Assembly: GCA_002269645.1 (NCBI GenBank)
Contig: NIVC01003274.1
Location: 62,001-126,000, forward strand
Reading direction: 5' to 3'
Source: Macrostomum lignano
Taxonomy: Eukaryota
Length of the DNA: 64,000 nt
Shown here: positions 5,171 to 56,414 of the stretch, piece by piece
Layout: each line of letters opens with the position of its first letter
Numbering within the stretch: position 1 is the first letter of the stretch
Made by a program: the position numbers and the translations under genes
The notes under the pieces: generated by a model
What the model was told of the DNA's origin: nothing
The model's database searches: none
What the model saw: only the letters and a program-made list of their open reading frames with translations

Positions 5171-5215
5171 CCCACTCACTCAAGTCAGTCAGTCAGTCAG
5201 TCAGTCAGTCAGTCA

Positions 5216-5255
<40 letters not shown>

Positions 5256-9260: not shown

Positions 9261-9357
9261 CAATAAGTAGCTAGAGCGACAATTTCCTTAGCTTTATAGT
9301 GGCTCCTTTAAATTGGCATGGCGCTTTATACCTTTACATTTGAAATTGGATATCTTG

Positions 9358-12550: not shown

Positions 12551-12619
12551 TCTATTGCGCTTTTTTTATGTTTAGCAGTTTTTTTGTTTTTAAGGTGTTT
12601 TAATAAAAAAATTATTTTG

Positions 12620-16080: not shown

Positions 16081-16131
16081 AAGACAGACACTGGGAGACA
16101 GGCAGACAGACAGACAGACAGACAGACAGAA

Positions 16132-16184
<53 letters not shown>

Positions 16185-18111: not shown

Positions 18112-18120
18112 ATAGATAGG
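17849..18120. repeat. (GATA)n microsatellite
   Basis: Direct reading. Confidence 0.98.
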
Positions 18121-22400: not shown

Positions 22401-24705
22401 TGAATATTATGAAACAAGAGCAGAAAAGAGACTGGCTAGTGAGATGCAGCGTTAATCAGTCGGGAGTGACATACCCGGATGTGGAAATTGAGTTAGCAAG
22501 CGATGCTGACAGTGAGTCAAACGATGCATTCAATCACTGTTAATTGTTCCAATGCAAGTTCAAAGGTTTTTTACCACTTAAATCTACACTACACGTTGCT
22601 ACATTTGTACTCGTATTAATACGAGCGTAATGCAAGAGACCTGCGAGCACCCCGACGCTACGTCTTCGGCGACCTTGTCCGCAATCAGCTGCCCGTTCCG
22701 CTCACTCCTGATCACATACGAGCGTACGAGCGCCTCAATACTGCACACAGGCACGCACTCATACGCACGCTCCCACAAGGTGTACTGCGGCCCTGACTTT
22801 CTAAGCGTCAGGCATGTACCTCTCTGGGCCTTAAGGGCTGGTCCTCATGAGCACTGAGCACGTTTGCTCTACTCACCTCCAGAATAAAAACAAATGAGCG
22901 TTTTTAATATTATAAACTGTACTCGTTCGTATTCTGTTGGCTGCCATTAAAGCGACTTTTGATAACAGTCAACCCACAGCCAGCGTGGAGTCGACCCAAA
23001 TTAATTGGTCATTCCACATGTAAGCACTCGAGAGTGCTTACTTAAGCAACTATTCTTAATCGTTAAATTTTCAGGTAGTGTATCTTCATTTGCTTATTAC
23101 CCCTCGTAACTTTGAGGTTGTAACTGTTGCGAGCCTAAGTGTTCGATGTGTAACTACTCTGCCACTTACTAACCCCACTTTCTTCAGCTTTCTACTATCA
23201 GTGTGGACTGAGTTGCATAATTTTGCCGATTTTATCTGCCCTCGGCCTCATCCTGAGCTGCATGATTATTCGAAGAATTCGCCGCGCTAAATCAGCAAAG
23301 CCAAACTCGACTTCAAGTAGAAGTTCGACATTTAGAGGACGACGTACCCTCCTCTCGAGTGCGGCCACCTCGCCGCAGGCACAGGTAGGGTTAGCCACAG
23401 ATTTAGTTTGTACATTAGGGCACGCATGTAAGTGTCAAATACTGGTGTTTTGATGAAGAATAGCTTTAAACTTAAAAGAAAATTCTAGCTACCAGGGGTT
23501 GTTTTGGCTATTCGCTCAAGCACTTTTGCTACTGGCTTTTGCCTGAAACTGAAGCTATTTCTTAGATTAGCCTGGACACAGATTGCCTGGTAAATAGCGC
23601 TGCTTATCTGATCAGATTTCAGGTGTGCACAGAAGCACAGTTCTAATTAGAACTTCCCTCAGCCTGAACGGCAATATTACATAAGTCCATGTGACTAAAA
23701 TTTAGCAGTGAATTTCGGTGCATCTAATACCAGCTTTTCTAGAGCTAGATCCACTTTTGTTTCTTTAAAAGTTTAATTCCCATTCTAAATAGCAATATAG
23801 TAGAGATATTCTGTTGAGTTTGTGAAATGAATTGCGATCGCTTTCAATCAAGCGTGCTATGGCCTGCACGAGTATTCTATGAAGCCGTAGCCCATTGGTC
23901 AATCATGGATGAATAAAACCTTTGGTCTAGTGCGGCGCTCTGATGTGCCAGCGGCCCAGGCTCGATTCCAAGTGCAGTCATTAATTTGGGGCTAAATTGG
24001 AATCTCGGCTTGGCTCTGCTCGTGCAATTAACGCCCCTGATCAGGGCCAACCCCCAAGGCACAGTGAAGTGCACATGTCTAAGATAAAGTTAGGGCCGCT
24101 GTAAACTCCTGTGTGAGTGAGTGCCTGTGCGTATGACTGCGTACGTATCCGCGCGCTTGTGTGCCTGCTCAGGGGAGTCGGGGGAATGGGCAGCAATGCC
24201 TCTCGCCGGTTGTGACAATGTCGCCTAAAGTGCATCATGGGTGCAAACAGCTCCTTGCCTGTAACAAAAAAATGGCCCTTATATTCCGTAGCCCAGAATC
24301 ATGAGCAGGCTGAACTGCTAGATAGACAAGGAAGAAGCTGGCGTGATCAAAGCAATCTGTTAACTTTCTCACCTTTAAGGCCTATTAAAGTATCATGTTA
24401 AAATTCTTCAAAAGAAATGACTCTGAATAACAGAAATCAATTGTTTCCACCCCCAGCGAGCGGCACCACAGCTCACTCATCATCAGGTTGATTCCTCGGC
24501 GTCAGTGAGCACAGGTGGTCCACCACCTGCAGAAAGCAGCAGCCGCGGCAATGAAAACAAGTCAATTAGCAGTCAAGAGACCGACCCAGTGTACGAAGAA
24601 GTATCTTTGTGTGTCTACAGGCCGGTGCACCCGCTGCCACGGTACTCACGGCAGTTCTCAGAAAAAAATTGTCGACGCGCCCACGACTCCAGTCGGTTTG
24701 ATTGA
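19455..24705 (+). CDS. Family-1 receptor C1: signal peptide, discoidin-like domain, 3 Ig-like domains, TM, Tyr-motif tail; apparently intact
   Basis: Exons 19455-19548 (MKDFYKLLQLLLLC), 19636-19824, 20803-20966, 21037-21109, 21205-21377, 21455-21581 (FTANFSLHGALLTC), 21665-21822, 21899-22073, 22142-22296 (CSIWNVQHSC), 22373-22511, 23188-23384 (TM CIILPILSALGLILSCMII-RRIRR), 24457-24705 (DPVYEEV). Phases join without stops; two donors (21110, 21378) are weak. Confidence 0.8.
19888..20782. repeat. 39-bp intronic minisatellite (AGCACTCTGAGACAGTGTGAGACCAGCTAGCATCTAATT)n, ~23 units
   Basis: Period 39; intron 2 of C1. Confidence 0.97.
22640..22880 (-). mobile_element. Diverged partial SINE related to family 1 (paralog at ~60400-60650)
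   Basis: Similarity to the SINE body (GCGGCCCTGACTTT...GGCATGTAC). Confidence 0.45.
23881..24270 (+). mobile_element. tRNA-derived SINE family 1 (intronic in C1)
   Basis: GCCGTAGCCCATTGG head interrupted by a short insertion, then GGCTCGATTCC B-box; body matches the 50100-50467 copy. Confidence 0.75.
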
Positions 24706-25764
24706 AACTCTTGATCACATTCTGTAGGAACCATTGAATAGAATGCACTGCAAACGGCACTTCGAGTATGTTCAGTAAACATTCTGATTCTACAAAAATA
24801 GGGATTGCTTCATCACTATTTGTATTACTAATATTATCATTATTAAATGCACACACCCAGTGTTTTGAGTTTTATTTTTTACGATATTATTTGAGGCAAC
24901 CTTATAAACACAGCGAAATAAGAAATTAAAAAAAGCTAGTGCGCAACGTTTTTTGGCGCAAATCGAAATTTAAAATAGAATCTCATATGCGCAAACAAAT
25001 TATTCGAGATTCTTTTCGGTACCGATATGAAGCCTCAGGGCAGTTGCATTCTGGCCTGCGTCATGCCTTTGATGTATTTTTTGGGATTTCCATTATAAGA
25101 AGGGCCAGATAGAGAATCTAGCGCATTACTGTGGAGAGAGGAGAGGGAGAGAAAGAAAAGGGAGAGAAAAAGAGAAGAGATAATACAGTTGAGAGAGACA
25201 AGCTTTGTGCGGACTGCATTGCTATTTTGAAGTTTCAAAGGACCAGATGCGTATTAGATAGAGAGACTTCGCAGGTCGCATGTTACCTGGGAACCGCAGT
25301 TTGCCAACCCCTGTTTTAGAGTTATTACGTAAAGTACTTTATCCTCTGTAGGAAGTCGCTGTTAAATTCGAAACTTTATCCATGATTTCCTGTTCAAACT
25401 TATAACAGGAGCACAATAAAAGTTCCCACTACACCTAAGCAGGAAACGAACTTCACTTCCTACACAGCACCCACATGGCATTTTGGGCAGGTCCTGTTCT
25501 CATAAGATATCTTTGGTCTCGCAGTCCTCATATATTGCTTTGCAGGCCAGTTTGTGGTTCGCTAATCTAAACTGTAACAGGGTGTGCTTAAATTCAATTC
25601 CAGCTCAAAAGCCAGCTCTGTGTGCTCTGATTGATTTTGCTACTCGTCCATGCTGACAGTTTCGCATCATTTTGCTGTTGACTTTAGCTGCAATGCCAGC
25701 CTCTGTAGCTATATTGTTGACTATATATGGTTAGCTATATATGGTTAGCTATATATGGTTAGCG

Positions 25765-26080
25765 GTTGTAGTTTTAGTGGTTAGGGTTTCAGACTCACGA
25801 CTTGAAGGTTGGGGTTTGATTCCCGATCGGACTGGAACAATTTGTGTCGCTTGATTGAATTTGAATTTTGAATTTGAATTTTGCATTGCTTCATAGTTCA
25901 CCCAGCTGTAAAATGGGTGCCAGCATTACTGGGGTAATTGAGGGTGTGTGGCGACCCCCAGTCCTTGGACTGAACAGCCGTACGCAGCCTTCAGATGCAC
26001 CGCGAAATAGCTGCGGCTGAGCTGTCGGTTGCACATCTGGCCCCATTGGGGCAGGTGTAGTCAATAGTTATTGTTATTAT
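25765..26080 (+). mobile_element. tRNA-derived SINE family 2 with CORE/Meta-like central domain
   Basis: Degenerate A/B boxes (TAGTGGTTAG; GGTTTGATTCC), central TGCATTGCTTCA..TTCACCCAGCTGTAAAATGGG, and a TTA-rich tail. Confidence 0.65.
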
Positions 26081-26873
26081 TTATTTATTACGCAGTTATA
26101 TGTAGTATTCACTGCTATCTGAAGACTTAGCAACTGAATAACTTTTTTCAAGTTTTTGCAAAATCTATTGTACATTCAATTGTATCGTCTAAAACTTTCG
26201 CTGTACTGTAAATAAAAAAATCGTAAAATGGTAAGTTGTACTTGCTTTAGGATTAGATAATTTAGACTCATACCTCGTTTCTGCGGAATCTGAATTTAAA
26301 ATTATAGAGAAGTTGATTTCAGTAGTCCCGAAGGAACATGCACGATCGTCTTTGCAACTATAGAATCATCCTGACGCATCTGAAACTTGTAATTTTAGCT
26401 TCAATATTGCAAACTAGACAGCGCAACGGCGACTATAATCAAATTCATAACTACAAAAAAGCGTACAACCAGAAATTCAGTTTGGGTTGTTCCTGCCTCG
26501 ATGCTGCTTTCGAATTAAAGGTTACATAATGATCTGGCTGTCACAAACAGTAAGCATCTGTGACGGCAAGAAACACTGAACTTCGCTAGCTGCAGGTAAA
26601 TTTAAGGCGTGATAAATTTCTGCCATCCAACAATATTATCAGCTGAAAGCATAATCCAAGCCAAGTTGCTCAACAAGAAACGAAAAAGAATACCAGATGG
26701 ATCACAATCTTGTATGCATTCTGGTGCTGTTACTGAGCTCAAGAATTGCATGCAATGCTCTGCTCTGCACTGATGCAAGTCACGAGAAGGGTCAGCTGAG
26801 TTACTTACTGCCTTTTGAGCCTTTCATTCATGCCTCAGAAAATTTAGCGAATCCTTTGCGATAAATGTTTTAG

Positions 26874-28466
26874 TGACAGTGCAGCTGAGCAGGGCTGACG
26901 TTCTGCGCACCTGGCAACCCAGCGGTGCGCACTGCCGTTGGTGGGAGAGTCGGCAGTGCTGGAGGCGGTGAGCTTGCGAGACCGGGGTGAGTGACGCTGA
27001 CCGACTCATTCTCATGATGCATGATGAGGCAGAGGGAGTTTGAGACACAAAGTGTGAGACAGTGTGAGACCAGCTAGCATCTACGAGCGTAATTAGCACT
27101 CTGAGACAGTGTGAGACCAGCTAGCAGCCAAGCACTCGTGTTGCAGATGGCCAGTGGCGCCAAACACTCGTGTTGCAGATGGCCAGTGGCTCGCAGCAGC
27201 TCCGGTCGGCTCGCCCGTGTCAGCGGTCGGAGCCTCGAGCCTCCCGCTGGAGCTGCAGCTGGAGGATCCGTGCCGCGCCAGCTGGGAGGCCTTCGGCAGC
27301 AGCGACCGCTGGAGGCACCTTGGAAGATCTTACAACAAGGTAGCAATGTTTACCTCGAACCCGTTGTGTATCTTTGCGGGATCGAGTATTTTAATAAAAG
27401 CAAGATCGAGGGAAATTTTTGCTTCAGGGTAAGGTCCGGTACATACTGGTCAGGAGCTGGACGAATGTTCCGCTAAGTTGGAGTGCCATGAAACTGTCAG
27501 GTCTTTTATTAAATTATTAAATCATCCTACTTATAATGGATGCGTTAAATTTTGTGACAATCGAGGCGCAAGACTAGTGAGTTATCTTTTTTAGGACCTT
27601 ATGCTCCACTGAACCTCACCGTGATGAACATTATGCAATGTTGGTTTAAAAACGTGGAAGCCATGAAGGCTGGGACCTTTGCCTGCCTCTTAGTTTCGAG
27701 CTGTCTTAACGGCTCGCTTGGCTGCCTCTTGAAGTATAGCAACGGGTCAACTCATCACCTGAGACAGGTGTGCCAATCTTTTTAAATAGATTTCGAATTG
27801 TCTGGAGCTTTGCTAAATTTTCTTATAAAACTCTCCATCATGGCAGCTGAACAACCAGACGCAGCCTGCAGTGTTCGAACTCAGAGCCACCTCGGCAATG
27901 CACGATGCGACGCTCAGCTGCTTTCTGACAGACTGACCTGCTGAGCGCATTGAGCAGACTATTGGCATTATTCGTGAGAGCGTTTTAATGAGAATGTTTC
28001 TGTTTCAGTTGACCCTGCCAGTCTGTCAGTATCGGTGTCACCCGTGTGGGTCAGCGGCAGCAGCGTTACTGTGAATGTCACATCAGCTCCGGTTTACCCA
28101 GCACTGCATCACAGCTGCAGCATCATTTCTGCCAGCTCTGAGTGGCGTCTGGATGAAAACCGCACAGATGTGAGATGAACTCATGACTTCTCTTTCTGCA
28201 GGACATCCTGTGAGATCAACTGTGCCTGACAATTCTTATCTTTACTGTTACTCATTGTTGACGTTCAAACAACTTCCAGGTAAAAACGGCTGTCGCAAAA
28301 AATGACAAAAATCAGGCACTGGTGGCGGTGGCGTCTCAGTTCAGATTCCAGGTCAGCGCCGAGATGCTGAACGGCACGTTGGAATGCGAGGGCAGATTTA
28401 GAGACCAAGTGAGGGAAACCGTTGCAGTGCAAACCAATGAGCGCTTTTTCATATCAGCAATAAGTG
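26874..28466 (+). pseudogene. Family-1 copy F: truncated pseudogene
   Basis: Exon-2 homolog with a large internal deletion, ~2-unit minisatellite, duplicated acceptor and exon-3 homolog. Ig exon with TGA at 27934-27936 (LSCFLTD*PAERIEQTIGII vs C1 LTCLLPDRPGIRIEQTIGIV). Further exons SVSPVWVSG and FQVSAEMLNGTLEC. No TM or tail exons found. Confidence 0.75.
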
Positions 28467-28670
28467 GTGAGCTTCTTCAGAAAAAAGTTTCCATACTGAA
28501 TGTAGACATAATTGCGTTTTTATTTGCAATTCAGCCGTCTAATTTGGTACCCTTTGATGAACTGCCTGTCTGCAAAAAATTCAAACTCCAAATATTTTCA
28601 AACTGCTATTATCCTTCTAAAACAGAACAGTTGACAGAATTATAGGGTCAATCGTACATTCCAAATGTCC

Positions 28671-28830
28671 GGGTTTGTAGCCTGGTGTTTAGAGCGTCGG
28701 ACTCACAACTTGAAGAACGGGGGTTCGATTCTCGATCGCACTGGAATAATTTCTATCCTTGAGCAATACACTCAACTCTGCATTGCTTCAGTTCACCCAG
28801 CTGTAAAATGGGTGCCAGCATTATGAAAGC
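28671..28830 (+). mobile_element. tRNA-derived SINE family 2, 3'-truncated
   Basis: TAGCCTGGTG A-box-like, GGTTCGATTCT B-box, CCTTGAGCAA...CCCAGCTGTAAAATGGG core. Confidence 0.7.
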
Positions 28831-29443
28831 TTGGGCGTATCTCTATCTGATCCGGCGCAACTGCAGAAGTTACCAACATTTGTAAACAGTAGACAGATTC
28901 TAGGAAAATCAGTGGTCTGCTATAATTAATTATAATCTTGCAATTCTTACATGAATTTTGTCCATCAAAGCAGCCTTTGACTAACTGTGAGGCTAGCAAA
29001 GGCAAGCGTGTCAGAGGTCGCTTTTAAAAGCTAATAAAAGCCATGGATTATTGAATACGCTCGTGCAACGAGAAATTATGATCACTGTGACGTTACACCC
29101 ATCCGCCCAAAAAGCTTCTGAACAATCGCTTGAAAAACCATAGTTTACATGCAAATTCAAGTTTTAGTCACATTTCTGCTTGTAGGACTTGATTTTTGGC
29201 TGTTTTAGATTTTAGTAGTTTTGTAAGAACTTGGAGCCCTAACGCACTTGAAAACCTGCAACCTGCAATCTACCGTAAATACCGAGAAACAACTTTTTTT
29301 AGCATATCGGACTGGCCGAAAGTGCCACAGCGATTCTAATCAGATTTATAACTTGAACCGGAATGTGATGTCTCTCACCAAAGCGTACAACCAGAAACTC
29401 ACCGGCTGGGTCCTTCCTGCGTCGATGCTTCTTCCGAAAGAAA

Positions 29444-29848
29444 GGTCGGATAAAAAGCTCTTAGCATCTCTCTGACTAGTCCGATGTTTTTAACTGACAA
29501 CCGCTGAGACAAGTCGGAAAAGCGTGACTGAATACAGTAACAAGGTCTGATAAAAAGCTCTTAGCATCTCACTCTGACTATTCCGATGTTTTTAACTGAC
29601 AACCACTGAGACAAGTCGGAAAAGCGTGACTGAATACAGTAACAAGGTCTGATAAAAAGCTCTTAGCATCTCACTCTGACTATTCCGATGTTTTTAACTG
29701 ACAACCACTGAGACAAGTCGGAAAAGCGTGACTGAATACAGTAACAAGGTCGGATAAAAAGCTCTTAGCATCTCTCTCTGACTATTCCGATGTTTTTAGC
29801 TGACAACCGCTGAGACAAGTCGGAAAAGCGTGACTGAATACAGTAACA
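29444..29848. repeat. ~100-102-bp tandem repeat, ~4 units
   Basis: GGTCNGATAAAAAGCTC recurs at 29444, 29544, 29646 and 29748. Confidence 0.9.
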
Positions 29849-30377
29849 AAGACAATCCTAACTAGGAAAACCCCACTGCTCCGTATGCTAGACCGAACAG
29901 ATATTGGTATATCCGCAACAGATTGGGAATATACTGGGGATAGGCAATTCATAATAACATCTTCTTTCAAAAGAACTATTTAAATCTAAATTGAATTTCT
30001 CATCTTAAAGTTCCGCAATAATCAAATTTTAATAAAAATTTCACAGCCAGAAAGTGTCTGAGCTAAAAAAACTGTCACCTCTGTCTCTCCGGTCCTGCGA
30101 TAGCAAGTGAGAAGGTAGAGAATTTCTATTCTACTAGTGGCAAGAGATCAGAAACGTGGCAAACTTGCCATGAAAGCATCAAAACACCAGATGGAGTGAA
30201 TGCCAGTACAGTCCATTGCATTGCGATCAGATATGATGGGCTTTTATGCTGCTTGCTGGATGCAACGGAACACGTCATTTAAAATATAAAAGAAGCAGAA
30301 TTAGGTCTGCGATTGTAACTTTAAAACCGGATAGCCAGCAACAGACTCGTAGCAGCAAAGATTTTAATAAAAGACCA

Positions 30378-33300
30378 ATGAAAATTTCGCTTTGGCAGTT
30401 GCTGCCTCTGCTGCTGAGCATGCGAGTTGCTGCATCTTTGGACTGCTCCGCTGTGAATCGCACGGGTGAGTCAGCTGCTTTTAGCGGCAGCTCAAAGTCT
30501 GGCAAGGCAAAGCTGCAAATCCTTTGCGCTAAATGTTCCAGTGTCAGTGCAGCTGAGCAGGGCTGACGTTCTGCGCACCTGGCAACCCAGCGGTGCGCAC
30601 TGCCGTTGGTGGGAGAGTCGGCAGTCAGAGACAAACCGATTCCCTGCTGCTGTGCGGTCCGGGCCTCGGTGGCTTGTGATGCAGCTGAGGCAGCCGATGA
30701 TGCTGGAGGCGGTGAGCGTTCGAGACTGGGGTGAGTGACGCTGACCGACTCATTCTCATGATGCATGATGAGGCAGAGGGAGCCTTGGACCCAAAGTGTG
30801 AGACAGTGTGAGACCAGCTAGCATCTAATTAGCACTCTGAGACAGTGTGAGACCAGCTAGCATCTAATTAGCACTCTGAGACAGTGTGAGACCAGCTAGC
30901 ATCTAATTAGCACTCTGAGACAGTGTGAGACCAGCTAGCATCTAATCAGCACTCTGAGACAGTGTGAGACCAGCTAGCATCTAATTAGCACTCTGAGACA
31001 GTGTGAGATCAGCTAGCATCTAATTAGCACTCTGAGACAGTGTGAGACCAGCTAGCATCTAATTAGCACTCTGAGACAGTGTGAGACCAGCTAGCATCTA
31101 ATTAGCACTCTGAGACAGTGTGAGACCAGCTAGCATCTAATTAGCATCTAATTAGCACTCTGAGACAGTGTGAGACCAGCTAGCATCTAATTAGCACTCT
31201 GAGACAGTGTGAGACCAGCTAGCATCTAATTAGCACTCTGAGACAGTGTGAGACCAGCTAGCATCTAATTAGCACTCTGAGACAGTGTGAGACCAGCTAG
31301 CATCTAATTAGCACTCTGAGACAGTGTGAGACCAGCTAGCATCTAATTATCACTCTGAGAGAGTGTGAGACCAGCTAGCATCTAATTAGCACTCTGAGAC
31401 AGAGTGAGACCAGCTAACATCTAATTAGCACTCTGAGACAGTGTGAGACCAGCTAGCATCTAATTAGCACTCTGAGACAGTGTGAGACCAGCTAGCATCT
31501 AATTAGCACTCTGAGACAGTGTGAGACCAGCTAGCATCTAATTAGCACTCTGAGACAGTGTGAGACCAGCTAGCATCTAATTAGCACTCTGAGACAGTGT
31601 GAGACCAGCTAGCATCTAATTAGCACTCTGAGACAGTGTGAGACCAGCTAGCATCTAATTAGCACTCTGAGACAGTGTGAGACCAGCTAGCAGCCAAGCA
31701 CTCGTGTTGCAGATGGCCAGTGGCTCGCAGCAGCTCCGGTCGGCTCGCCCGTGTCAGCGGTCGGAGCCTCGAGCCTCCCGCTGGAGCTGCAGCTGGAGGA
31801 TCCGTGCGGCGCCAGCTGGGAGGCCTTCGGCAGCAGCGACCGCTGGAGGCCGATCGGACGTGGCGAAGCGGTGAGACAGATGCAGCAAATGTTTGGTTTT
31901 CTTTCCACCTCAAGCCAATCACGTTTCACTCCAGGCTTTGACAACGTTTATCCGGCTACTCAGCGAGAGTTCGCTTGCTTGGCAGGCCATAAATATCTCA
32001 GGAAGGTTGCTCATTTCTCTTTACTAATTTCATTCAGTCTTTTATGTATCGGTGATAAATATTTCCAGGCCGCTATGCCGTAATGCGCATCAACATGAGC
32101 CTGTCCAGTCACCTGCTTTTCCATCGGCTCGGCCTCTTCGTCAGCGAAGACGCTCAACGTTCGACTTCCTTGTTCTTCCTAGACAGCTGAAGCTTCGACA
32201 AGGCCGCCTGCTGGCTTTCCGATTCTTCTGGAAGAATTGTCAGCGCCCCGCTGGTGAGCTTCCATGCTTTCAAGCATGCATTCGATTGTGCATTCAGTAG
32301 GCTAAGAAATTTCTCAACTGTCTTCAGGTTGGCTCATCTTCAGCTGATGCCAATGGGATTCGGACTCACAAGTTCGAGATTAAAACTCTCCCTAATTACC
32401 ACGGCAAGCTTCTGCAGTGCGGCTTGAGCACTTCTCATGGCGCTATTCTGCTTGAGAAGCTGCTGTTGTGGGAAGGTGCTCTTCTTTTGCTTTTCTAAAC
32501 TTACGAGCAGTTAGAATTGCGGATCGTAGCTGGCATTGCTACTGAAGTTTAGGGACAGACTCAGATGTACCCTTGACAGCCTAGTTATCTTAACGCCATG
32601 GTAAATATAATTATTTTTAGTTCCAGTCAAAGTTCTGCACGTCTCACCAGTCCTGGTTGCTGGGCAGCTGGCAAAGCTCAGCGTGTTCTCAGACTCCCTG
32701 CCTGAGGCTCAGCACCGCTGCTCCATCGAGAGGCCGGGGTCGCAGCGAAGAAGACACCTCACTGTTCTCAGCACTGTAACGTCCTGTCGAATTCAAATGC
32801 ATTGCGTACGCATTTCCAGGAAATGAACTTTGATTATTGATTTTCAATTTCAGAGCCAGTCAAAAACAATCGACAGCACGAACAGAATACTCGTCAGAGT
32901 GCGCTCAGGGTTCAGTTTTAATGTATCGATGGCTGATAGAAATGCCGACATCGTGTGCAAAGGAACTGCTGGATCAGAAGGGAAGGACATTGTTGGGTCT
33001 CGAAGTATTTCAGAAATCAGTGGTATGCACATCCGAACTCTTTGGGGAAAACATGATAATAAATCAAAAAATAAAAATAACTTTTTCAGTCTATGCTTCT
33101 ATGCTAAATCAGTCTATGCTTCATCTTTCAGAGCCCTGCGAGACAGCCGTGGACTTGGGACCGGAGAAATTCTGGCTGGCGGGGCAGACCAAGCTGGTTC
33201 AGGTGATCTCTAAGCGCTGCAGCATCTGGAATGTGATCCACAGCTGCTGGCTGAAACTGAATGGTGACGCTGCAGTCAACACGCCGCTTCAGAAAGTGCA

Positions 33301-34875
33301 AGTGAGTGAAAATCACCTTGGGAAAATTTTCAATCAACAAACTTCATTCAAGTCTAGAATATTTCAGCTGTCTTCACCTCTGCACCAATTGTGATTACAG
33401 CAGGGTGAGTTCAACAGTACTCACGAGCTTCGGGTAGTCGAGGCGATGACCCGTCAGAATTGGCAGGTTTTGTGCAGCGTCAGTCAGTCTGGAGTTGAGC
33501 ACACTGACTCAGAGAGCAGTCTGAGCAGTGCACCAGCTGTTTTTAGTGAGTCCTTTTAGCCGATTCGAGTCTGATTATAAAATTTGATGTTGCGACTCAA
33601 TTGAATTGAAAGAAAATCAAAAGTCGAATCTTTCTTGCCATTGAAAAAACCTCAAGGCGAAGCCAGCAAGTCAACGCTTGAACTCGCGTTAGCCTACGTC
33701 GGTAACAGTCAGTCTGAAGTGAGCGTGCATGCAGTTGATCAAAATGAAAACCAAAACGCACTACTTCCGGTCTACAGCATCAACTGCTCAGTTGCGGGGG
33801 ATGAGGCGTCGACAGAGCTGAGCAGCAGCAATAGCAGTAGCACTGAGTGGCGTGCCTTACTGAAACTGAGATGGAACCGCTCATCTGTGAACGTCTGCTG
33901 CTCCAGTTACCAAACTTATGCCGGATTGACTGTCTTTCGGTCTCTGCAGTGCAAATCTTTAACCCAACAGCCCATTGGTAAAGACGGTGAGCAGATGTTT
34001 GTGGTTAGTGATTCACAGTCATCGTCATTAACCGATGAGCAGCATTTGATCGGCTTCTATTAAGAGAATGCCCTAGCTCTGTTGGTAGTCAGCCTTTGGT
34101 GATTTTCTAAGAAACGGAGTGTCCTGTCCCTCTGCCATAGTCGTCTTTGACAGAAGCAGGAAGTTCTCAACTGGAAATACGAGCGTAATTGAAATATGGG
34201 TAGCTAAGATATGTTCTTAACATGACCTAATAGTAGCGCATAATGCTTCCCTGAAAATTGCAGCTCAGTGGGACGATCGCTCGGCAAGGTTTTTCTCGCT
34301 TCTATTGGCTTCTATACTGGCTTCACTAGTTGTGGGCTTCCTTCTGTCTGCAATATACCACAAATCTGGTATGCTTTTTACCTGCGAAAGAAATCCTGTG
34401 AGTCATATTTAAGTCATTTCAAAATTCAATTTAAAATCTGCCAGAAAGTGTTTCACGTCATTATTTCGTACCATTTATGGTGCTGTGTTCATGCATACTC
34501 CATAGATCAAAGTTCATCATGCATATTTTCTTAATGCTTCGACTATGAAATTGCGATTTTTAATTCATCCTTGATACATGGAATGAATCCTGTAAGCTTG
34601 CAAAATTTCAGCCACAGAGAGGTCACACTGGACTTCGAAGTCAGCACAATGCAGGTCAGGCCGTCCCAATGCGAATGCGGAACAACTTCGCAGTGCAAAG
34701 TGACTCACACGGCAGTAGTGAATACGACTACCCAACCACTGAGCAGCCAGGAAGCTGCAAAAATGAACAGTTGGGTAAAGAAGGTGCCTACACACAGGTG
34801 CTGCTGGTTCCTTTACAACAGGGACCACTGAATGAAGGTCGGGTTTACGTCAACCAGACTGAAAATGCTACTTGA
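30378..34875 (+). CDS. Family-1 receptor D: signal peptide, discoidin-like domain, Ig-like domains, TM, Tyr-motif tail; intactness uncertain
   Basis: Exons 30378-30465 (MKISLWQLLPLLLSMRVAAS), 30542-30730, 31713-31870, unresolved exons ~32070-32500, 32621-32775, 32854-33022, 33132-33301 (CSIWNVIHSC), 33401-33545, ~33650-33975, TM 34264-34368 (FFSLLLASILASLVVGFLLSAIY) and tail to 34875 (SEYDYP, AYTQV, VYVN). Phases at exon 3/4 and TM/tail could not be reconciled by eye. Confidence 0.65.
30797..31692. repeat. 39-bp intronic minisatellite, ~23 units (intron 2 of D)
   Basis: Same unit as in C1 and C2. Confidence 0.97.
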
Positions 34876-36540
34876 GTCAGTTGAGCATTAAAGTAAAGAA
34901 CTTGGGAGGCTGTGAGATCTATTTTGACATTGTTGCTTGCCGAGTGCACCAGTGTCCAATATTCAGTTATGCGAGCCATAATTAAACGCTTCAAACCGAG
35001 TCTGACTTGGCAACAAGTCGGTACTGCTATGCTTAATGATGACCAATACTGATTTATCACTGTGTGCACTATTAGCTCTGATTTGTAGATCTTTTTTGGA
35101 AAAAAATTATGTAAACTGAAGCCTCGGGATTCGGAATTGAGAGACAAGGAATCGATATATAATCTAACTGTGGTAAAACGAGTGTTAATTTCACTATTGC
35201 TGTTATGCGTCTTATCATGCATGGCTGCTGGCTGCTTATCATACTCTTCGAAGTTATGCATATAAGCGGCTTGACCAACCTCTCTGCTGCTTTGTCTGCA
35301 GTGGTCAGCTTGGTTTCCGTTCTTGCTTGCAGGAAAACAGAAAAACAGTAGTACAAATTTTTGTGTCTATTAGAAAGTAACTTTTTCAAACGGCCCTTTA
35401 TCTGATGTTATTCGAGTGCTCCCATAACAATAATTAAACTCGATTTTCTTGGTCAAGAATCCAAATATTTCTTTGTTTTGAATTCAAAACTCATTTAACA
35501 GGTTTATTTGTTGATTCTAGCAAACACTTTGAAAAAGTGCCGAAGCGTTTAGAAGTGAAATCTTTAAAGGCCACTCGACCCACTGCATTACAGCGCTGCA
35601 CATCTCGCGCGTGCTTTTACTTGAACGATTGCTCTAACTGTTCTCAATAAATTTGTAGCAAACTGTCTTGAGCCTTTGAGACGCTGAACTGATAGCTGTA
35701 GTTTTTCGTTGCGGTCGGATTCTTCATTGGCAGACTGTAGATCCGGTTTATAGTACTTGTACTGTCAGTAGCAGTGGACCGATTACCTTCTGGGAAATGC
35801 GCTCGTAGCTATGTGCTCCAAAGCAAAATGGGAGGACAGCATCAAAACTCAACAATGGGCTTAATAGCCAAGCAGTATAGGTCATTGGTTGCGTAGCTCG
35901 TACATGTATATACGGTGAACGGGTTATTATTATTATAAACGGACTTATTTTTCGACACAGGAGGGTTGGACAAATCAAGTCCTAATCGAAGGACTTACGA
36001 CAGCCTTAAACATCCTTCGAAGCACTGAGCACGTGATTGCGTAAGGTTTTGTTACTCGTTAAGATTGCTCATTTACAGGTGTGAAACGCTAAGGGCTTTC
36101 GGCAACCTAGTCTACTGTAAGCGTGCGTGATTGATACCATTTTAGGGGATCGATGGTGCGCACAGTATGATGGATTAAAATTCATGCAACGATTATGTCG
36201 GTCTCTAAAGGTCAACTGAATTTTTGATTGCTTATGTGGAGCTAATATTAGTCATATTATATTTTCAGCAGATTTACAAACGCATTTTCTTACCTTTCTG
36301 TTGTCACTGCACTCTACATGGGTTTTTCTTGTGCTTTGGATCGACTCTTATCTCTTTTGCTTAAAAATGTGCAGTATATGCTGAAGCAAAGATTGCAAGG
36401 TAGAATTTTTGTATAAAATACAGAAAAGCCAGACAATGATACTTGATTTAGACAAAAGTAAATTGGTAAAAGCTAACACTAACTAAAATAAAGTGCGGCT
36501 TTTGGATTCAAGTACGTCTACGGACTCGAATCGTTTTGCA

Positions 36541-37477
36541 ATGTCTGATAAGTTAAACAGCGGAAATTTCAAACTGACATTTGCACTTTTGAATCTGCAA
36601 GTCTTCATCTTGTTGTCATTGGTTTCAGAGTATGTAGCAAATAAAACACTTTTTCCAATGTTTCATCCAATTGTACTTAAGAGTTTCTTGTTCCACATTT
36701 CAGACACCATGCCGCAAATCACTATTGTGTGAGCGGACTGACGCTGAGTCTGCGACTCGACGATTTCTACCACAGAGACGAGCTCATCATTCCGCAGCTG
36801 TCAGATGAGTCCGAGCAGAGTTTGATGAAGCGCAGGATCTGTAAGTGGGCCGTCAGAGCGGACTCCAGAAGGAGGGATCTTCAGCTCGTGCTGGAAGGGC
36901 GAACAGCGGGTTTTGGGAAAAACCCTGTCAGTTTAAACATTCGCTACTCACCGGGCTCAAAAGGATGGGCGGCTGTGTCGCCTGGAATGTTTCGAGTATT
37001 TCCGTTGGCAAAAGGGCAAGTCTAATTTTGCTCATGTCATCATTACACTGTTTGCGCAACCTACACAGCTGCATGTAGCAGGCCGTATCATACATATAAA
37101 CGGCATGGCATGCTAAATATAGAGATTTGCTTAAATTTTGTATTGCTTTAATAAATAGACTCGCAAAACGCGTCATACATGCTATTGCTTGCTTCCATAG
37201 CATGATTTCGATTCCATGCAAATTTTTCTTTCCAGAAATCAGTTCAATGTGGAGACAAACTGGGATACGAGATATCAGAATAGAAGCATGTCAAACCTGA
37301 GGATTGTCCTGCCACTTCCCGGGTTCTGCAGCCGGGAAATGCTCAGCTTCAATAGAAAATGCTACGCCGTGAGCTCAGCAAAGCAGAATGCTTCAGCCGC
37401 AATGTCCAGCATTGAAGGCGATGCTCAGCTGGCCAGCTTCTCCAGCATGGCTGAGATCAGCGAGCTCATCGCTGCCA
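36541..37477 (+). pseudogene. Family-2 copy B2: signal peptide + CUB-like + first half of C-type lectin domain, 3'-truncated by a mariner remnant
   Basis: Exons 36541-36629 (MSDK..FALLNLQVFILLSLVS), 36704-37015 (CKWAVRAD..LQLVL; GC donor), 37236-37477 (FCSREMLSFNRKCYAV..LASFSSMAEISELI). Phases 2/2/1 match. No last exon found downstream. Confidence 0.7.
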
Positions 37478-37512
37478 GTGAGTGAGCATCGTCTTAGATT
37501 GCAATGTAGGTT

Positions 37513-38438
37513 ATGATTTCGAAATTCAATGATACTTTTCTCATCATATCAGACACCAAAAAGCTGCAGGAAGACCCACAGCAGTCTGTCAGTGAGCTAG
37601 CGGACTGCTTGGAGATTGATTTCGAGACAGTCCATCGCATCCTGACAGAGGATCTCCATCACCGCAATGTCTGCTCAGTCTGGGTGCCCCGCGACCTCAC
37701 TGCGGAACAGCGGCAGCTTCTTGTGAACTGCCTCAAGCAGATGCGCAAGGTGCTCAGCAGCCGGTGCTTGAATGACATCCTAAATTGCCTGGTTGTTGAG
37801 GATGAAACCTGGCTCCACCTGGATGGCAAGGGCAGCAAGGCAGGCAATCGCTGCTGGCTGGGCGCTGGGGACTCCAGGAGGTCCATCTCAGACAAGAAGA
37901 CCATGCTGCTGGTGGCCTTCAAACAAACGAGTCTCCATCCGCACAACTTCACCAAACACCAACCTCGATGGCCAGTATTTATCGATTTTGTCCTGCACAC
38001 TGCGGACCTCTGGCGCACTCTCCAGTCAAATCAAATTCACCTGGAGTAGGTACTGTGGCAGATGGACAACGCACAGCCGCACACCTGTAAGGCTGCTTCG
38101 GATTTTCTGCCTGGACGGCAAGTGAATCTGCTCTGGCAGTGTCCCTACAGCCTGGACTTCAACTTATGCGACAGATTTCTGTTTAAATTGCTGACGGCTG
38201 ACTTTTCTAAGAGGATTTTTGCAAACCATGAGAGTTCAAACACGTGGCGTTGCACTGGTTCCGGCAGCTGAAGGAAAAACACTGCAGGCTGAGGTGGAGA
38301 AGCTGTATGAGCACTACTGCCAGAGGGCGATTGAGAATGGGGGACTCTGTGTTGCTGAGTGATACAGTTTTGTTTATCTGTGATTGCAAGTTCGTCTGTT
38401 TTCACATCAGTGGCATTACTTATGACACACCCGAAGTA
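37513..38438 (+). mobile_element. Degenerate mariner (Tc1/mariner) transposase remnant, 5'-truncated
   Basis: Motifs WVPRDL (cf. WVPHEL), DETW, DNAQPH and YSLDFNLCD (cf. YSPDLAPxD), with stops/frameshifts. Candidate right TIR TTATGACACACCCGAAG-TA at ~38420-38438; left TIR not found. Confidence 0.88.
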
Positions 38439-39039
38439 CATTACATGTGAATTGCTAAACTCTCTAATTCAAAACCGTACCAACAGCAACTGCAATCAAC
38501 TATAAGTTTATATTTAGCTTTCACTTGACTATTTTAATTTGAATTACTATTATTTGTGTTTCAAAGTTAATACCTTCATGTTGGATACCACAATGCACAA
38601 TATACCGCAACATGCCTTCACAGGACACTCTAAATTATATAATTTTTTTAATTTGTTAAAATCTGTCCTTTCTAACTGGAAGCAGCTTCTTATTGTAAAT
38701 AATATCTGGGCAAACGCAGGCTCTTCTGTGTTGTTTATCGGTCACATGACAGCCACCATCCAAGAGTAGAGTTCCTACAGTTTAGTGGTAAAAAACCATA
38801 AGCATGCCAAAACTTGCATGGAAACCACACAGACATAAGGAATAGATTGACTGCTACTGCAGTTCTGGATGCGATCTGATATGATGGGGCTGAAGTTCTG
38901 CAGCTGCCGAACTTCTACAAGCTATATTTAAGACAGTTAATATAAAATTAAATACCAAAGACATCCAGTTTTAAATTTTCAAATACAAGCTAACAAGCAA
39001 GAAGCAAAAAGGTAATCATACTAGCGTATTTAAAAAACT

Positions 39040-42000
39040 ATGAAAAGTACGCTTTGGCAGTTGCTGCCTATGCTGCTGAGCATGCGAGTTGCTGCATCAC
39101 TGGACTGCTCCGCTGTAAATCGCACGGGTGAGTCAGCTGCTGTTAGGGGCAGCTCAAAGACCAGCAATGCAAGGCTGCAAATACTTTGCGATAAATTTTT
39201 CAGTCACAGTGCAGCTGAGCAGGGCTGACGTTCTGCGCACCTGGCAACCCAGCGGTGCGCACTGCCGTTGGTGGGAGAGTCTGCAGTCAGAGACAAACCG
39301 TTTCCCTGCTGCTGTGCGGTCCGGGCCTCGGTGGCTTGTGATGCAGCTGAGGCAGCCGATGATGCTGGAGGTGGTGAGCGTTCGAGACTGGGGTGAGTGA
39401 CGCTGACCGACTCATTCTCATGATGCATGATGAGGCAGAGGTAGTCTGGGACTCAAAGTGTGAGACAGTGTGAGACCAGCCAATAACTAGCACTCTGAGA
39501 CAGTGTGAGGACCAGATACTGTAGCATTCAAGCACTCTGAGACAGTATGAGGACCAGCTACTGTAGCATTCAAGCACTCTGAGACAGTATGAGGACCAGA
39601 TACTGTAGCATTCAAGCACTCTGAGACAGTATGAGGACCAGATACTGTAGCATTCAAGCACTCTGAGACAGTATGAGGACCAGATACTGTAGCATTCAAG
39701 CACTCTGAGACAGTATGAGGACCAGATACTGTAGCATTCAAGCACTCTGAGACAGTATGAGGACCAGCTACTGTAGCATTCAAGCACTCTGAGACAGTAT
39801 GAGGACCAGCTACTGTAGCATTCAAGCACTCTGAGACAGTGTGAGAGCAGCTACTGTAGTCTTCAAGCACTCTGAGACAGTGTGAGACCAGCTACTGTAG
39901 CCTTAAAGCACTCTGAGACAGTGTGAGACCAGCTACTGTAGCCTTAAAGCACTCTGAGACAGTGTGAGACCAGCTACTGTAGCATTCAAGCACTCTGAGA
40001 CAGTGTGAGACCAGCTACTGTAGCATTCAAGCACTCTGAGACAGTGTGAGACCAGCTACTGTAGCATTCAAGCACTCTGAGACAGTGTGAGACCAGCTAC
40101 TGTAGCATTCAAGCACTCTGAGACAGTGTGAGACCAGCTACTGTAGCATTCAAGCACTCTGAGACAGTGTGAGACCAGCTACTGTAGCATTCAAGCACTC
40201 TGAGACAGTGTGAGACCAGCTACTGTAGCATTCAAGCACTCGTATTGCAGGTTTCTTGTGGCACCCAGCACCTCCAGGGGTCGGAGTCGGAGTCTCGAGC
40301 CTCCCGCTGGAGCTGCAGCTCGAGGATCCGTGCAGCGCCAGCGGGGATGCCTTCTGCATCGATCGCTTGCGGAGTCATGATGGCTCCAGTGGCACCGCCG
40401 TGGTGAGTGAAAGAGAAAATTTGCTGTTTGTACGAGCGCATGCTGCACACTGTCTTCCACATTGTGAAGAACTCTGACATTCTGAGCACCCCTCTCACTA
40501 GCAGCCAGCGGCCTTCTTTCTGTTTAGCGGCTACATGTGCCGGCAGCCTCTCCAATGGAACGGTCTCCTTCTGCATGGTGAGGTCTTTCAATTTAGTGCT
40601 TTGATTCGCGGGTTATTGAGTTCGTTTTGCAGCGCCGCGAAACCGCTGTTCGCTGCTCAGTGCAGTGAAACGGCTGATGGCGCTTCATTCGCAGTAAAAA
40701 ATATTCGTCCCACCGCACCCTCAGGCCGCACGGCCCCAATGCAGCTGAAGGAGACCAGAAACTCATTTTGCCTGAACTGCGAGCCCCTCACATGGAGACC
40801 CGGAGATCGCATTGGCTTCTCAGTGAGCAGCTGCGGCTCCCAGACTCCAGGCTGCTCAGTTCGACTCGCGGATGGCAGCAGGCGGGAGGCTCAGTTGGTG
40901 AGCGACTGGCCGGTCTTGCCTGACAGATTTTCCACTTTGAGTCTGAGATCTCAGGGCATTCTGTGAATTTTAGCTGATCTCAAGACCGGGCGCTGGTCGG
41001 ATTCGAGTCACCCATTTTGAGTACTTTGTGGAGGAGAGCGACATTCCGCGGACTCTGACCTGCTGGCAGGGGGACCCAGCGGCTCTGCAGATTGAGAGGA
41101 AAATCGCTGTAGCATGCAAGTCTTGGGCAGCCAATTCTGGTATCCAAGGCTTCGTATAGTTTTGCACCTGCTTAAACCTCTTGATTTTACTTTTATTTCA
41201 GCTTCCGATGGAAGCTGTACTCTATCGGTCTCTCCGGTGTGGGTCTCAGGCAGGAAGATTTTCTTAGAAGCCGAAGCGCAGCGATTCTTTCCGGAGCCCA
41301 GGATTCAGTGTTCGATCAGGGCGGTGACGGAGCAGCCTTTGAAAGTTGAGAGTCAGGTGAGGACAGGTGCACTGTCTTTGAGTGGGCAAATTTGGGTGAG
41401 CAGGACCGCTAACAGATCACAAATTGGGGTTGAAAATCTGACCTCCACGTGATCCACCCAATTTTCCAGTCACTTGCCAACCCAAACACTTTGCGCGCGA
41501 CCTACATGTATCCTCACACAGACACTTAAACTTTGGGTGCCACTTAGTTTACATGTATATCTTGTATATTCTTCAACTTTCAGAGCCGGTCTGTAGTGAA
41601 GGACAATGAAAACAGGGTTCTGCTGTCAGTTCGCTCAAGGTTCAGCTTTCACGCCTCGCTCTCGATGGTTGGAGGCCGAATTCTGTGCTGGGTGAATCTG
41701 ACTGGAGGCGAAAATCGTGTTAGAAGTACTGTGAAGATAAAATTAAATCACAATATAACGTTGATAAGCGGTGAGAAATTCTAAAAATAATTAGATTTAC
41801 ATATTTTATAGATATGAGCCACCCAGCCACCCCTCACCTAGCCACCCCTCACCCAGCCACCCCTCACCCAGCCGCCCCTCACCCAGCCACCCCTCACCCA
41901 GCCACCCCTCACCCAGCAACCCCTCACCCAGCCACCCCTCACCCAGCCACCCCTCACCCAGCCACCCTCACCCAGCCACCCCTCACCCAGCCACCCCTCA

Positions 42001-43551
42001 CCCAGCCACTCACTCGCACTGCAGAGCCGTGCCAGACGGCTGTTGATCTGGGCTCGAGTCCGCACTGGGAGGTGGGCCAGACCCGCCACATCGCAGTGAC
42101 CTCCAGCGCCTGCAGCATCTGGAATGTGAGCCACAGCTGCCGGCTGCTGCAGGCTGATGGCGCTTCACCCGTGCCGCTCCGCAGAGTTGAAGTACGCTTG
42201 CACTGAGACTGGCCAAAGTGCTCAGAGAAGTGCAGAGCCTCACCTGTCCCCATCTGCACCCTCATTCGCATTGCAGCAGAGCAGCTTCAGCAGCGCTCAC
42301 CAGCTGCAGGTGAGCAGGTCGATGGCTCACCAGAACTGGTCGGTTCGCTGCAGCGTCAACCAGTCAGGTGTGGTGTATGATAAGGCTGAGAGTCTGGAGC
42401 AGCTGCGACCGCCGATTTTCTGTGAGTGCCGAACAGTGAATGAAGCGAGTCAGCTGTGAACGCTTTGCTTGAATGCGATTTCCAATTTCACTGCAGACCC
42501 GGCAAGCATTCAGGTAAATGGCAGCATTGAGAGCTCGCGACTGCACCTGGCTGTGGCTGCCTCCGACGCTCGGCCTCCGGTGACATCCGTGAAATGCTTA
42601 ATTTCGAGTTCTATTGTGAGCAGTAGCTTTGATATTTGTTGTTGGTTTTTCTGCTTGAAATTATTCGCAAAAATTCGAACAATTTATTTTCTTCCTGTCT
42701 CCAGCAAGTGACTCTGCACAAGCAAAGCGATGCCAACACGTGGAGTTTTGATAGCGATGGAGGTCCAATGAATGTTTTTTACAGAAGGCAGCACCTCGCT
42801 GCATCGAACATCACTATCTACTGCACTGCCCATCAGGGGTCAACGAATGGCAACCTGATATTTCAGAGCCACAGCTCGAAACAAATTTACGTAGCTGAAT
42901 CGATTGGCACTACGGATCTGCCAAGCACTCAATCAGTGAAGGCTGTTGAGTCAAAGGGTATGGGGCTTGAGTCGCACTCACTGTTCTAACATGTTTATTG
43001 AGAACATCGGAGCTAATCAACCTTCAAGAAACACACTAGCTGGTAAAATTATTGCTGCAGGTCCATTCTCAACCGTGTACGCCTTTCCACTGTCGCACCT
43101 GCTCGTTGCGTCCGCTTCGGTGATAGCCGTAATTGTGATGGTTGGCATTGCCTCAGCTGGGATTGCCTGGGTAAATAATACCTTTTCTGGATAGGTACAG
43201 TGGTAGCTATCACTGTCAGTCAGTCAGTCAGTCAGTCAGTCAGTCAGTCAGTCAGTCAGTCAGTCAGTCAGTCAGTCAGTCAGTCAGTCAGTCAGTCAGC
43301 TGTTACCCTTGCAGAGAGTGTCCCGGTCCAGATTAGTCGCACTGGCTGCTCAGCGCAGAGGCGGCGGTGCTCTTCAGATGCAGCCGCTGGCAGCCGCGAC
43401 CTCCGCGGGCGCCGGCAGCAGCGCGTACGACTACCCGTCCACGAATGCGACAGTTCAGGGCAGCAGGAGCCACAGCGAGGCCGGAGAGTCCAACAACATA
43501 CCCAGTGTCTACCTGGTGCTCACTCCGTCGAGGAGGTCTCAGCAGCAGTAG
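39040..43551 (+). CDS. Family-1 receptor E: signal peptide, discoidin-like domain, 4 Ig-like domains, TM, tail with YDYP and ITIM-consensus SVYLVL; apparently intact, ~730 aa
   Basis: 14 exons: 39040-39127, 39204-39392, 40251-40402, 40502-40577, 40725-40897, 40974-41115 (GC donor), 41202-41356, 41584-41770, 42025-42191, 42277-42421, 42497-42615, 42705-42957, 43061-43170 (TM LLVASASVIAVIVMVGIASAGIAW), 43315-43551. Phases join without stops. Confidence 0.82.
39460..40240. repeat. 41-bp variant of the intron-2 minisatellite (AGCACTCTGAGACAGTRTGAGACCAGCTACTGTAGCATTCA), ~19 units
   Basis: Period 41; the first ~29 nt are shared with the 39-bp unit. Confidence 0.95.

Positions 43552-52509: not shown

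Positions 52510-56414
<3,905 letters not shown>

Follow-up and report, generated by a model that had tools for sequence, protein, structure and literature searches.

Candidate phosphotyrosine docking sites in the modular tails of a tandem immunoglobulin-like receptor family of Macrostomum lignano

Results

A tandem cluster of receptor genes

We analyzed a 64,000-nucleotide stretch of the genome of the flatworm Macrostomum lignano (GenBank assembly GCA_002269645.1, contig NIVC01003274.1, positions 62,001 to 126,000 of the forward strand), hereafter the window, which carries a cluster of genes for immunoglobulin (Ig)-like receptors whose predicted cytoplasmic tails hold tyrosine motifs of the kind recognized by SH2 domains. 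Self-comparison and tblastn identified six tandem copies of one receptor family on the plus strand: A (~1-5813), C1 (~19584-24705), B (26873-28393), D (~30390-34875), E (~39040-43551), and C2 (~57257-62491). C1 and C2 lie inside a 7-kb segmental duplication (18120-25197 versus 55793-62998, 95.5% identical), and A and E share a patchy identity of 78-95%. The exons of B, a fragment of a gene of the P0007/8/9 type, were placed by tblastn. Here, P numbers denote family proteins or gene models of M. lignano from public databases, and L001 is another contig, which carries P0005. In A, a TGA at 1900-1902 replaces the Trp codon of the conserved CSIWNVSHSC motif, for which E has TGG at the equivalent place, and tblastn revealed no transmembrane (TM) exon between the Ig exons and the tail exon; A is probably a pseudogene in this assembly. 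Copy B is a pseudogene, with a TGA at 27934-27936 (within TD*PAERIEQ), no downstream Ig, TM, or tail exons, and no family motifs found 3' of the fragment.

The intact genes C1, D, E, and C2 encode predicted type I membrane proteins with an Ig-like ectodomain. Their plan consists of a signal peptide, a near-invariant N-domain, at least two Ig-like domains each spread over two exons, a small TM exon, and a single terminal exon encoding a disordered tail of 78-120 residues with a basic juxtamembrane start. The complete public models (P0005, P0007-12, P0021, P0027, and P0044) likewise have a signal peptide, the N-domain, a variable count of cysteine-bearing beta domains, a hydrophobic segment followed by basic residues, and a tail of 40-120 residues. 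In the NCBI model P0005, a small TM exon precedes a single tail exon, as in the window genes; the flanks of its locus on L001 contained no additional tail-bearing family gene.

A homology search with the conceptual translation of the gene ending at 43551 returned 17 matches, all 17 from M. lignano and most of them titled 'Ig-like domain-containing protein'. When a profile of 11 family members was run against 1.84 billion representative proteins, 32 matches were obtained, and the 10 that we looked up were all M. lignano proteins. In these searches, the receptor family was seen only in M. lignano. Exact model matches were found for the C1 tail (P0014, 100%) and for an exon of A (P0029, 100%), and P0018 (UniProt A0A1I8G6I6) matches the last ectodomain exon of E at 100% and shares its tail with E. 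The 843-residue model P0004, titled 'protein kinase domain-containing', raised the idea of a receptor kinase, which we rejected: it is a fused, repetitive model, and no kinase domain was seen in it by eye.

Pfam returned no match for the exon translations of the window and a borderline C2-set_2 match for P0038 (21.4 bits against a cut-off of 21), and a profile search of the family alignment against PDB sequences gave no match even at E ≤ 10. An AlphaFold model of the paralog P0005, which is not a window gene, was built from an 11-sequence alignment and is poor overall, with a mean predicted local distance difference test score (pLDDT) of 50; it comprises beta-sandwich domains at pLDDT 60-85, a TM helix at residues 608-639, a disordered tail, and the conserved N-domain at a pLDDT of about 30, where the fold is not resolved. 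Foldseek with this model gave 468 PDB matches at E ≤ 0.001, with multi-Ig ectodomains foremost. The best match was SYG-2 D1-D4 (E = 1e-10, at low TM-scores of 0.23/0.38 and 11% sequence identity), followed by the B-cell receptor, PirB, PD-L1, SIRP-alpha, and KIT. Because of these multi-Ig matches, we accepted the description Ig-like type I receptor, which applies to a paralog model and to its domains other than the N-domain; the beta-sandwich ectodomain domains that characterize the immunoglobulin superfamily are present in that model.

Transmembrane and tail exons

The TM exon of C1 (23188..23384) encodes ...GLSCIILPILSALGLILSCMII RRIRRAK...SPQAQ, in which a hydrophobic 22-mer precedes a basic stop-transfer sequence. 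The exon 5' of it ends at a phase 1 donor (aca|GTGAGT at 22512) compatible with the TM acceptor (TTCTTCAG| at 23187), and the donor of the TM exon itself (CAG|GTAGGG at 23384) is of phase 0 and compatible with the tail exon at 24457..24705 (acceptor CCCCAG|CGA, phase 0). The latter reads RAAPQL...DPVYEEVSLCVYRPVHPLPRY...SRFD followed by a stop codon, and it is 100% identical to the C terminus of P0014. None of the public gene models contains the C1 TM exon. In the segmental duplicate of C1, the tail exon of C2 lies at 62243..62491 and its TM exon at ~60949-61145.

For D, the TM exon (34264..34397) encodes AQWDDRSAR FFSLLLASILASLVVGFLLSAIY HKSGMLFTCERNP, begins at the acceptor used by P0018 (GKD|AQWDD), and ends at a phase 0 donor (CCT|GTGAGT at 34397/8). 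Its tail exon at 34612..34875 (acceptor TTTCAG|CCA, phase 0) reads PQRGHTG...SSEYDYPTTEQ...GAYTQV...RVYVNQTENAT and a stop, and P0048 shares this frame from RGHTGL onward at 99% identity. An alternative phase 1 donor at 34367, read by hand, would yield a 30-residue tail without tyrosines. The TM exon of E (43061..43170, PFSTVYAFPLSHLLVASASVIAVIVMVGIASAGIAW, donor TGG|GTAAAT) is included in models P0018 and P0001-3 and is joined in phase 0 (...IAW|GTAAAT to TTGCAG|AGA GTG) to the tail exon at 43315..43551, which reads RVSRSRL...SSAYDYPSTNAT...SVYLVLTPSRRSQQQ and a stop (acceptor CCTTGCAG|AGA, phase 0) and equals the C terminus of P0018. The tail exon of A (5538..5813) belongs to the E class, with 94.8% nucleotide identity to that of E. 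All of these exons are on the plus strand.

The frames in which a first-pass annotation of this DNA had read the tails proved to be those of the public M. lignano gene models: the A/E frame is used by P0018 and P0001-3 with the TM exon included, the C frame by P0014, P0017, P0022, and P0049, and the D frame by P0048. P0018 fuses D to E, P0019 fuses two genes, and several models cut through the conserved Ig cysteine motif; read against the genomic exons, the models with C or D tails are plainly fragmentary or fused.

Tyrosine motifs in the tails

The first-pass annotation, which covered the range from the first base of the C1 tail exon to the last base of the E stop codon (24457-43551), had listed a set of SH2-type tyrosine motifs. 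In a six-frame scan, every one of them was found on the plus strand and in a terminal exon: SSAYDYP (43417-43437) and SVYLVL (43504-43521) in E; SSEYDYP (34714-34734), GAYTQV (34783-34800), and RVYVN (34840-34854) in D; and DPVYEEV (24583-24603) and CVYRPV (24610-24627) in C1. Outside that range, the scan located SSAYDYP (5640-5660) and SVYLVL (5727-5744) in A, and DPVYEEV (62369-62389) and CVYRPV (62396-62413) in C2, again on the plus strand. Within one tail, no motif exceeded chance in composition-preserving shuffles, whether the immunoreceptor tyrosine-based inhibitory motif (ITIM) of E (P = 0.13), YxxP (P = 0.14-0.25), or YxN in D (P = 0.29).

It had also been argued that YDYP is retained between D and A/E in tails that are otherwise barely alignable, as if under selection. 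The tails of E and D in fact align at 37% identity over 57 residues (shuffle z = 8.1), and each reaches z = 3.0-3.5 against the tail of P0005; since E and D are homologous at this level, the retention of YDYP between them is weak evidence when taken alone. The C tails form a separate class, as had been proposed, and no similarity to the other tails was detected. By these comparisons, the tails are modular and fall into several unrelated classes.

We then counted motifs against 20,000 shuffles of each tail in 13 non-redundant tail classes, of which the window supplied three and family proteins 10. All tail classes are long, and all but one contain tyrosines. Among the patterns of the first-pass annotation, YxN was found in 6/13 classes (1.64 expected, P = 0.002), YxxP in 5/13 (2.3 expected, P = 0.058), and the ITIM in 1/13 (1.58 expected, not enriched). 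Three patterns defined post hoc stood out more strongly: Y-[DE]-x-[PD] in 9/13 classes (0.64 expected) and YxN within the last 12 residues in 4/13 (0.20 expected), both with P below the resolution of 20,000 shuffles, and YEE[VI] in 2/13 (0.01 expected, P = 0.00005). Because these patterns were post hoc and the tail classes share ancestry, the shuffle figures show that the sites were kept while the tails diverged extensively, and do not speak for independent origins.

The Y-[DE]-x-[PD] core occurs as AYDYP, EYDYP, PYDVP, PYDND, DYEDP, YYEDP, HYDLD, HYELD, and HYDTD; the YDYP of A, E, and D is one instance of it, and it is as part of this core in nine of the 13 classes that the proposed selection on YDYP gains support. 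Likewise, RVYVN of D is one instance of an extreme C-terminal Y-[VI]-N, and the terminal YxN is carried by D, P0005, P0011/12, and the distant member P0044, while A/E and C lack YxN; the YxN site annotated in D is thus part of a recurring C-terminal feature. YEE[VI] is found in the C type (C1 and C2) and in P0044. Many tails that share motifs have no detectable similarity outside them. Thus, the proposed alignment of tails against background gave a mixed outcome, in which Y-[DE]-x-[PD] and YxN recur, the ITIM does not, and YxxP is left at P = 0.058.

A/E-class tails are 90-94% identical to one another against 85-92% for their ectodomains, so that the tails appear conserved to the same degree as the folded part of the protein, which is unusual for a disordered segment. 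Sites of the Nck/Crk type (Y-D/E-x-P/D/V in a cytoplasmic segment that is disordered in the model) are kept among relatives, the pattern being post hoc, as are sites of the Grb2 type (YxN in the tail). Together, these patterns give moderate support to candidate tyrosine docking sites under selection in the tails.

The ITIM and the question of inhibitory and activating receptors

The first-pass annotation gave weight to SVYLVL as a perfect ITIM. The string does match [I/L/V/S]xYxx[I/V/L] in a type I receptor tail, both in E, where it lies 3' of the TM exon, and in A. It is limited to A, E, P0001-3, and P0018, whose whole tails are 90-94% identical; D, C1, C2, and every other class lack it. It occurs once per tail, at the position where other class I tails have YxN, and is also a plain YxxPhi. 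We found no retention of the ITIM beyond what composition and recent descent provide, as it occurs in one class of 13 and in the young A/E clade only. By chance, roughly one in eight tails of about 80 residues would hold a single consensus ITIM, which should not be read as evidence of inhibitory signaling; a functional ITIM in the A/E tails is unsupported.

No tail contains an immunoreceptor tyrosine-based activation motif (ITAM; Yxx[IL]x6-9Yxx[LI]), a relaxed ITAM, an immunoreceptor tyrosine-based switch motif (ITSM), NPxY, or a dileucine signal ([DE]xxxL[LI]). The TM segments of C, D, E, and P0007, read by eye, have no mid-membrane K or R. The tail of P0036, which lies outside the window, reads CPYDNDENYQTL and has a hemITAM-like [DE][DE]xYxxL string, DENYQTL, beside the conserved Y-D-x-D core; as a single post hoc match, it was set aside as a hemITAM.

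Three pairs of ectodomains, P0021/P0026, P0019a/P0019b (the two tandem genes fused in model P0019), and window D/P0027, are 88-89% identical and carry unrelated TM and tail modules, with local scores of 26-30, at background level. Tail cassettes have evidently been exchanged among paralogs, to judge from these pairs. As in paired receptors, similar ectodomains are thus found on different TM and cytoplasmic modules; the tails searched and the TM segments read revealed no activating member, which would show an ITAM, a short tail, or a charged residue in the membrane. ITIM-bearing inhibitory receptors recruit SHP-1, SHP-2, or SHIP in a phosphorylation-dependent manner, usually through two ITIM or ITSM sites that engage tandem SH2 domains. 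With near-identical ectodomains on unrelated tails, it is plausible that paralogs signal differently, as had been suggested. The suggested division into inhibitory and activating sets is not visible, because there is no ITAM, ITSM, or hemITAM partner and no basic mid-membrane residue in the TM segments read. The family resembles paired receptors in form only.

The N-domain block and neighboring sequence

The N-terminal domain, about 100 residues long (TVQLSRADVLRTWQPSGAHCRWWES...LPLELQLEDPC), is almost unchanged among paralogs. In D, the signal-peptide exon and the two N-domain exons occupy 30390..31870, and a 39/78-bp minisatellite is present in the intron between the N-domain exons; the corresponding block is at 19584-20969 in C1, at 39040-40400 in E, and at 57257-58731 in C2, always on the plus strand. 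The N-domain exons and the intron with its minisatellite are 95.7% identical in nucleotides between C1 (19630-20947) and D (30536-31857), whereas the rest of both genes is strongly diverged. Including the intron, the block is 92-96% identical among C1, D, and C2, and related stretches were found at 57303-58709, 39196-40358, and 26873-27324. The similarity looks like gene conversion or a very recent transfer of an exon block, and within the receptor, conservation is highest in the predicted membrane-distal N-domain. The N-domain minisatellite has a further copy upstream of the P0005 gene (L001:4509-5268).

CUB-like and C-type-lectin-like exons, for which Pfam gave no match, lie on the plus strand upstream of C1 (16527-18738), E (36681-37485), and C2 (53131-56411). 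Exons of this kind are joined to a family receptor in model P0010, and another resembling them precedes P0005 (L001:5735-5920); they may belong to a separate neighboring gene or supply the receptor genes with an alternative 5' region. Immediately 3' of the lectin-like exon that precedes E, a mariner/Tc1-type transposase-like open reading frame (ORF) in two frame-shifted pieces (37510-38271, plus strand), identified by reading and without a significant Pfam match, appears to interrupt that copy of the lectin-like gene. Just downstream of gene E, a G+C-rich block with long minus-strand ORFs (44340-49610, 57-63% G+C versus ~45% elsewhere) contains a 621-residue ORF with reverse-transcriptase-like and RNase-H-like sequence and, upstream of it, endonuclease-like and gag-like ORFs; from these likenesses, it is most likely a retrotransposon without long terminal repeats (non-LTR), of the long interspersed nuclear element type.

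Micro- and minisatellites are very dense in the window, at 957-1790, 2537-3089, 4560-5530, 9330-12555, 14240-16560, 41820-42010, 43215-43300, 52600-53150, and 54290-55380. Their repeat units include (AGTC)n, (CTAT)n, a 15-bp CCACCCCTCAC-type unit, and units of 56 bp and 69 bp, and several lie in receptor-gene introns; in both A and E, an (AGTC)n tract takes up the intron that separates the TM exon from the tail exon.

Discussion

We propose that the tails described here are predicted phosphotyrosine docking tails of the Nck/Crk, Grb2, and Src-SH2 types, carried by tandem, M. lignano-specific Ig-like receptors, and we give this proposal a rough probability of 0.55. The SH2 preferences on which it draws are established by peptide specificities of the Songyang type. 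Ligand-driven clustering would lead a cytoplasmic tyrosine kinase of the Src or Abl type to phosphorylate the tail tyrosines, and the phosphorylated sites would dock SH2 adaptors: pY-D-x-P/D/V (where pY is phosphotyrosine) those of the Nck/Crk type, pYxN those of the Grb2/Drk type, and pYEE[IV] the SH2 domains of the Src family. The receptor would thereby act on Ras-MAPK and actin pathways, in the manner of nephrin/SYG-2 and vaccinia A36, and different tail modules on near-identical ectodomains would turn one ligand into different outputs. SVYLVL of A and E fits the pattern of an ITIM and may or may not function as one. Flatworms possess receptor tyrosine kinases, and M. lignano has eight EGFRs (PMC4914847).

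Several points weigh against the proposal of docking tails. The three strongest patterns were defined after the tails had been seen, in classes related by descent. Between recent duplicates, the ratio of nonsynonymous to synonymous substitution rates (dN/dS) of the tail exons is just moderately low, at 0.41 for A versus E and 0.74 for C1 versus C2. The tail exons of C1 and C2 are 91.5% identical in nucleotides and all 14 amino acid changes fall outside DPVYEEVSLCVYRPVHPLPRY, but the length of this substitution-free run over the motifs is not significant (P = 0.15). All five models with a C or D tail (P0014, P0017, P0022, P0049, and P0048) lack the TM exon, and in no public model is a C- or D-type TM exon joined to its tail. 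That M. lignano has homologs of Nck, Crk, Grb2, SHP, and Src is assumed from Bilateria in general. Finally, literature searches for M. lignano Ig or tyrosine receptors and for the NCBI locus tags returned nothing relevant, and no phosphorylation, binding, or expression record for family members.

The same figures can be read as saying that the tyrosine motifs, the ITIM above all, play no part in signaling and arose by chance in disordered tails that evolve rapidly. The single-tail shuffles, the count of ITIM-bearing classes, and the C1/C2 comparison all agree with this, and of the two ITIM copies that the window holds, one belongs to the probable pseudogene A. Chance, however, would have to produce Y-[DE]-x-[PD], terminal YxN, and YEE[VI] far over shuffle expectation in otherwise dissimilar tails and leave A/E-class tails as conserved as folded ectodomains, and we regard it as an unlikely explanation of the motifs as a whole.

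A second alternative is that the motifs are trafficking signals, with YxxPhi strings (YLVL, YTQV, YEEV, YRPV, and YSQI) binding AP-2 mu2 for endocytosis and acid-rich stretches acting as acidic-cluster sorting signals. At least one YxxPhi is present in 8/13 tail classes, the ITIM consensus is itself a subset of YxxPhi, and clusters of S, D, and E abound in class II tails. This number of classes is nevertheless not above expectation (5.87, P = 0.17), the enriched motifs Y-[DE]-x-[PD] and YxN are not YxxPhi, and neither [DE]xxxL[LI] nor NPxY occurs in any tail, which makes sorting an improbable role for the motifs. That C- and D-type products are not membrane receptors at all, their TM exon being skipped and their 'tails' being C-termini of secreted or misannotated proteins outside the cytoplasm, would agree with the five models that omit this exon but is quite unlikely, since these models are fragmentary or fused, some cutting the conserved Ig cysteine motif, since C1, C2, and D each have, between their Ig exons and their tail exon, a TM exon whose phases fit and whose splice sites follow the consensus (GTGAGT donors), and since the complete models P0005, P0007-12, P0021, P0027, and P0044 all have a TM segment and a tail.

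Going beyond docking tails, one could imagine a flatworm-specific recognition system on a new plan, in which a gene-converted, near-invariant head, diverging Ig stalks, and swapped TM and tail cassettes would provide one ligand-binding head with alternative phosphotyrosine outputs, the A/E cassette, with SVYLVL instead of the terminal YxN, being an inhibitory variant that recruits SHP. This hermaphrodite might use it to recognize self and non-self, partners, or sperm; we offer it as a speculation with low odds.

Families of Ig-like receptors with tyrosine-motif tails have a central place in the immunity of vertebrates, and others are now emerging in cnidarians and tunicates. In our searches, no flatworm family of this kind had turned up previously. 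The M. lignano family is a testable candidate: lineage-restricted and tandemly amplified, with pseudogenes, exchangeable tails, and tyrosine sites conserved across the family. M. lignano is a laboratory model with established RNA interference and transgenesis. The negative result for the ITIM is as useful as the positive part of the analysis.

Comparison with known systems

Vertebrate paired receptors (KIR, LILR/PIR, SIRP, and Siglec) share with the M. lignano family the tandem clusters with pseudogenes and the near-identical ectodomains on different TM and tail modules, and two of them, PirB and SIRP-alpha, are among the Foldseek matches of the P0005 model. Their activating partners recruit an ITAM adaptor through a charged TM residue and have a short tail, features not seen in the M. 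lignano tails or in the TM segments read by eye; their inhibitory partners usually have at least two ITIM or ITSM sites, unlike any member here.

Nephrin and SYG-2 likewise combine a multi-Ig ectodomain with a disordered tail that carries pY-D-x-[V/P]-type sites. In nephrin, three YDxV sites follow one another at intervals of about 20 residues, and an Fn3 domain is present; the M. lignano tails carry a single Y[DE]x[PD] site, and Fn3 is absent. We take the likeness as a resemblance of fold and motif, not as membership. Nck binds the YDxV motifs of nephrin, and vaccinia A36 carries both Nck and Grb2 sites (PMC9333988). Disordered tails of the A36/LAT type have ordered Nck and Grb2 sites (PMC9333988). 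In A36, the Nck site precedes the Grb2 site, and the class I tails of D and P0005 have the same order, YD[YV]P and then a C-terminal Y[VI]N. The spacing of the candidate sites is ~40-55 residues in these tails compared with ~20 in A36, and the proteins are unrelated.

The Alr family of the immunoglobulin superfamily in Hydractinia differs from the M. lignano family in several respects. There is no sequence similarity between the two. Alr genes have one exon per Ig domain (PMC9546547), whereas each Ig-like domain of M. lignano is spread over two, and Alr tails contain ITAMs in 14 proteins and ITIMs in two (PMC9546547), against no ITAM and one ITIM class here. The membrane-distal N-domain of M. 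lignano is near-invariant, the most conserved part and not the most variable one, unlike in Alr, and we count the swapped tail cassettes as a further difference. In other respects, the two agree closely. Both are lineage-restricted families of single-pass receptors in tandem clusters, with Ig-like domains that sequence tools miss and that are Ig-like by predicted fold (PMC9546547). Alr is rich in pseudogenes, as is the M. lignano cluster, and its tyrosine motifs were also found by pattern search (PMC9546547). In both families, the tails are too diverse for a single alignment, and similar ectodomains can bear unrelated tails (PMC9546547). The Alr family of Hydractinia is the closest analogue of the M. 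lignano receptors.

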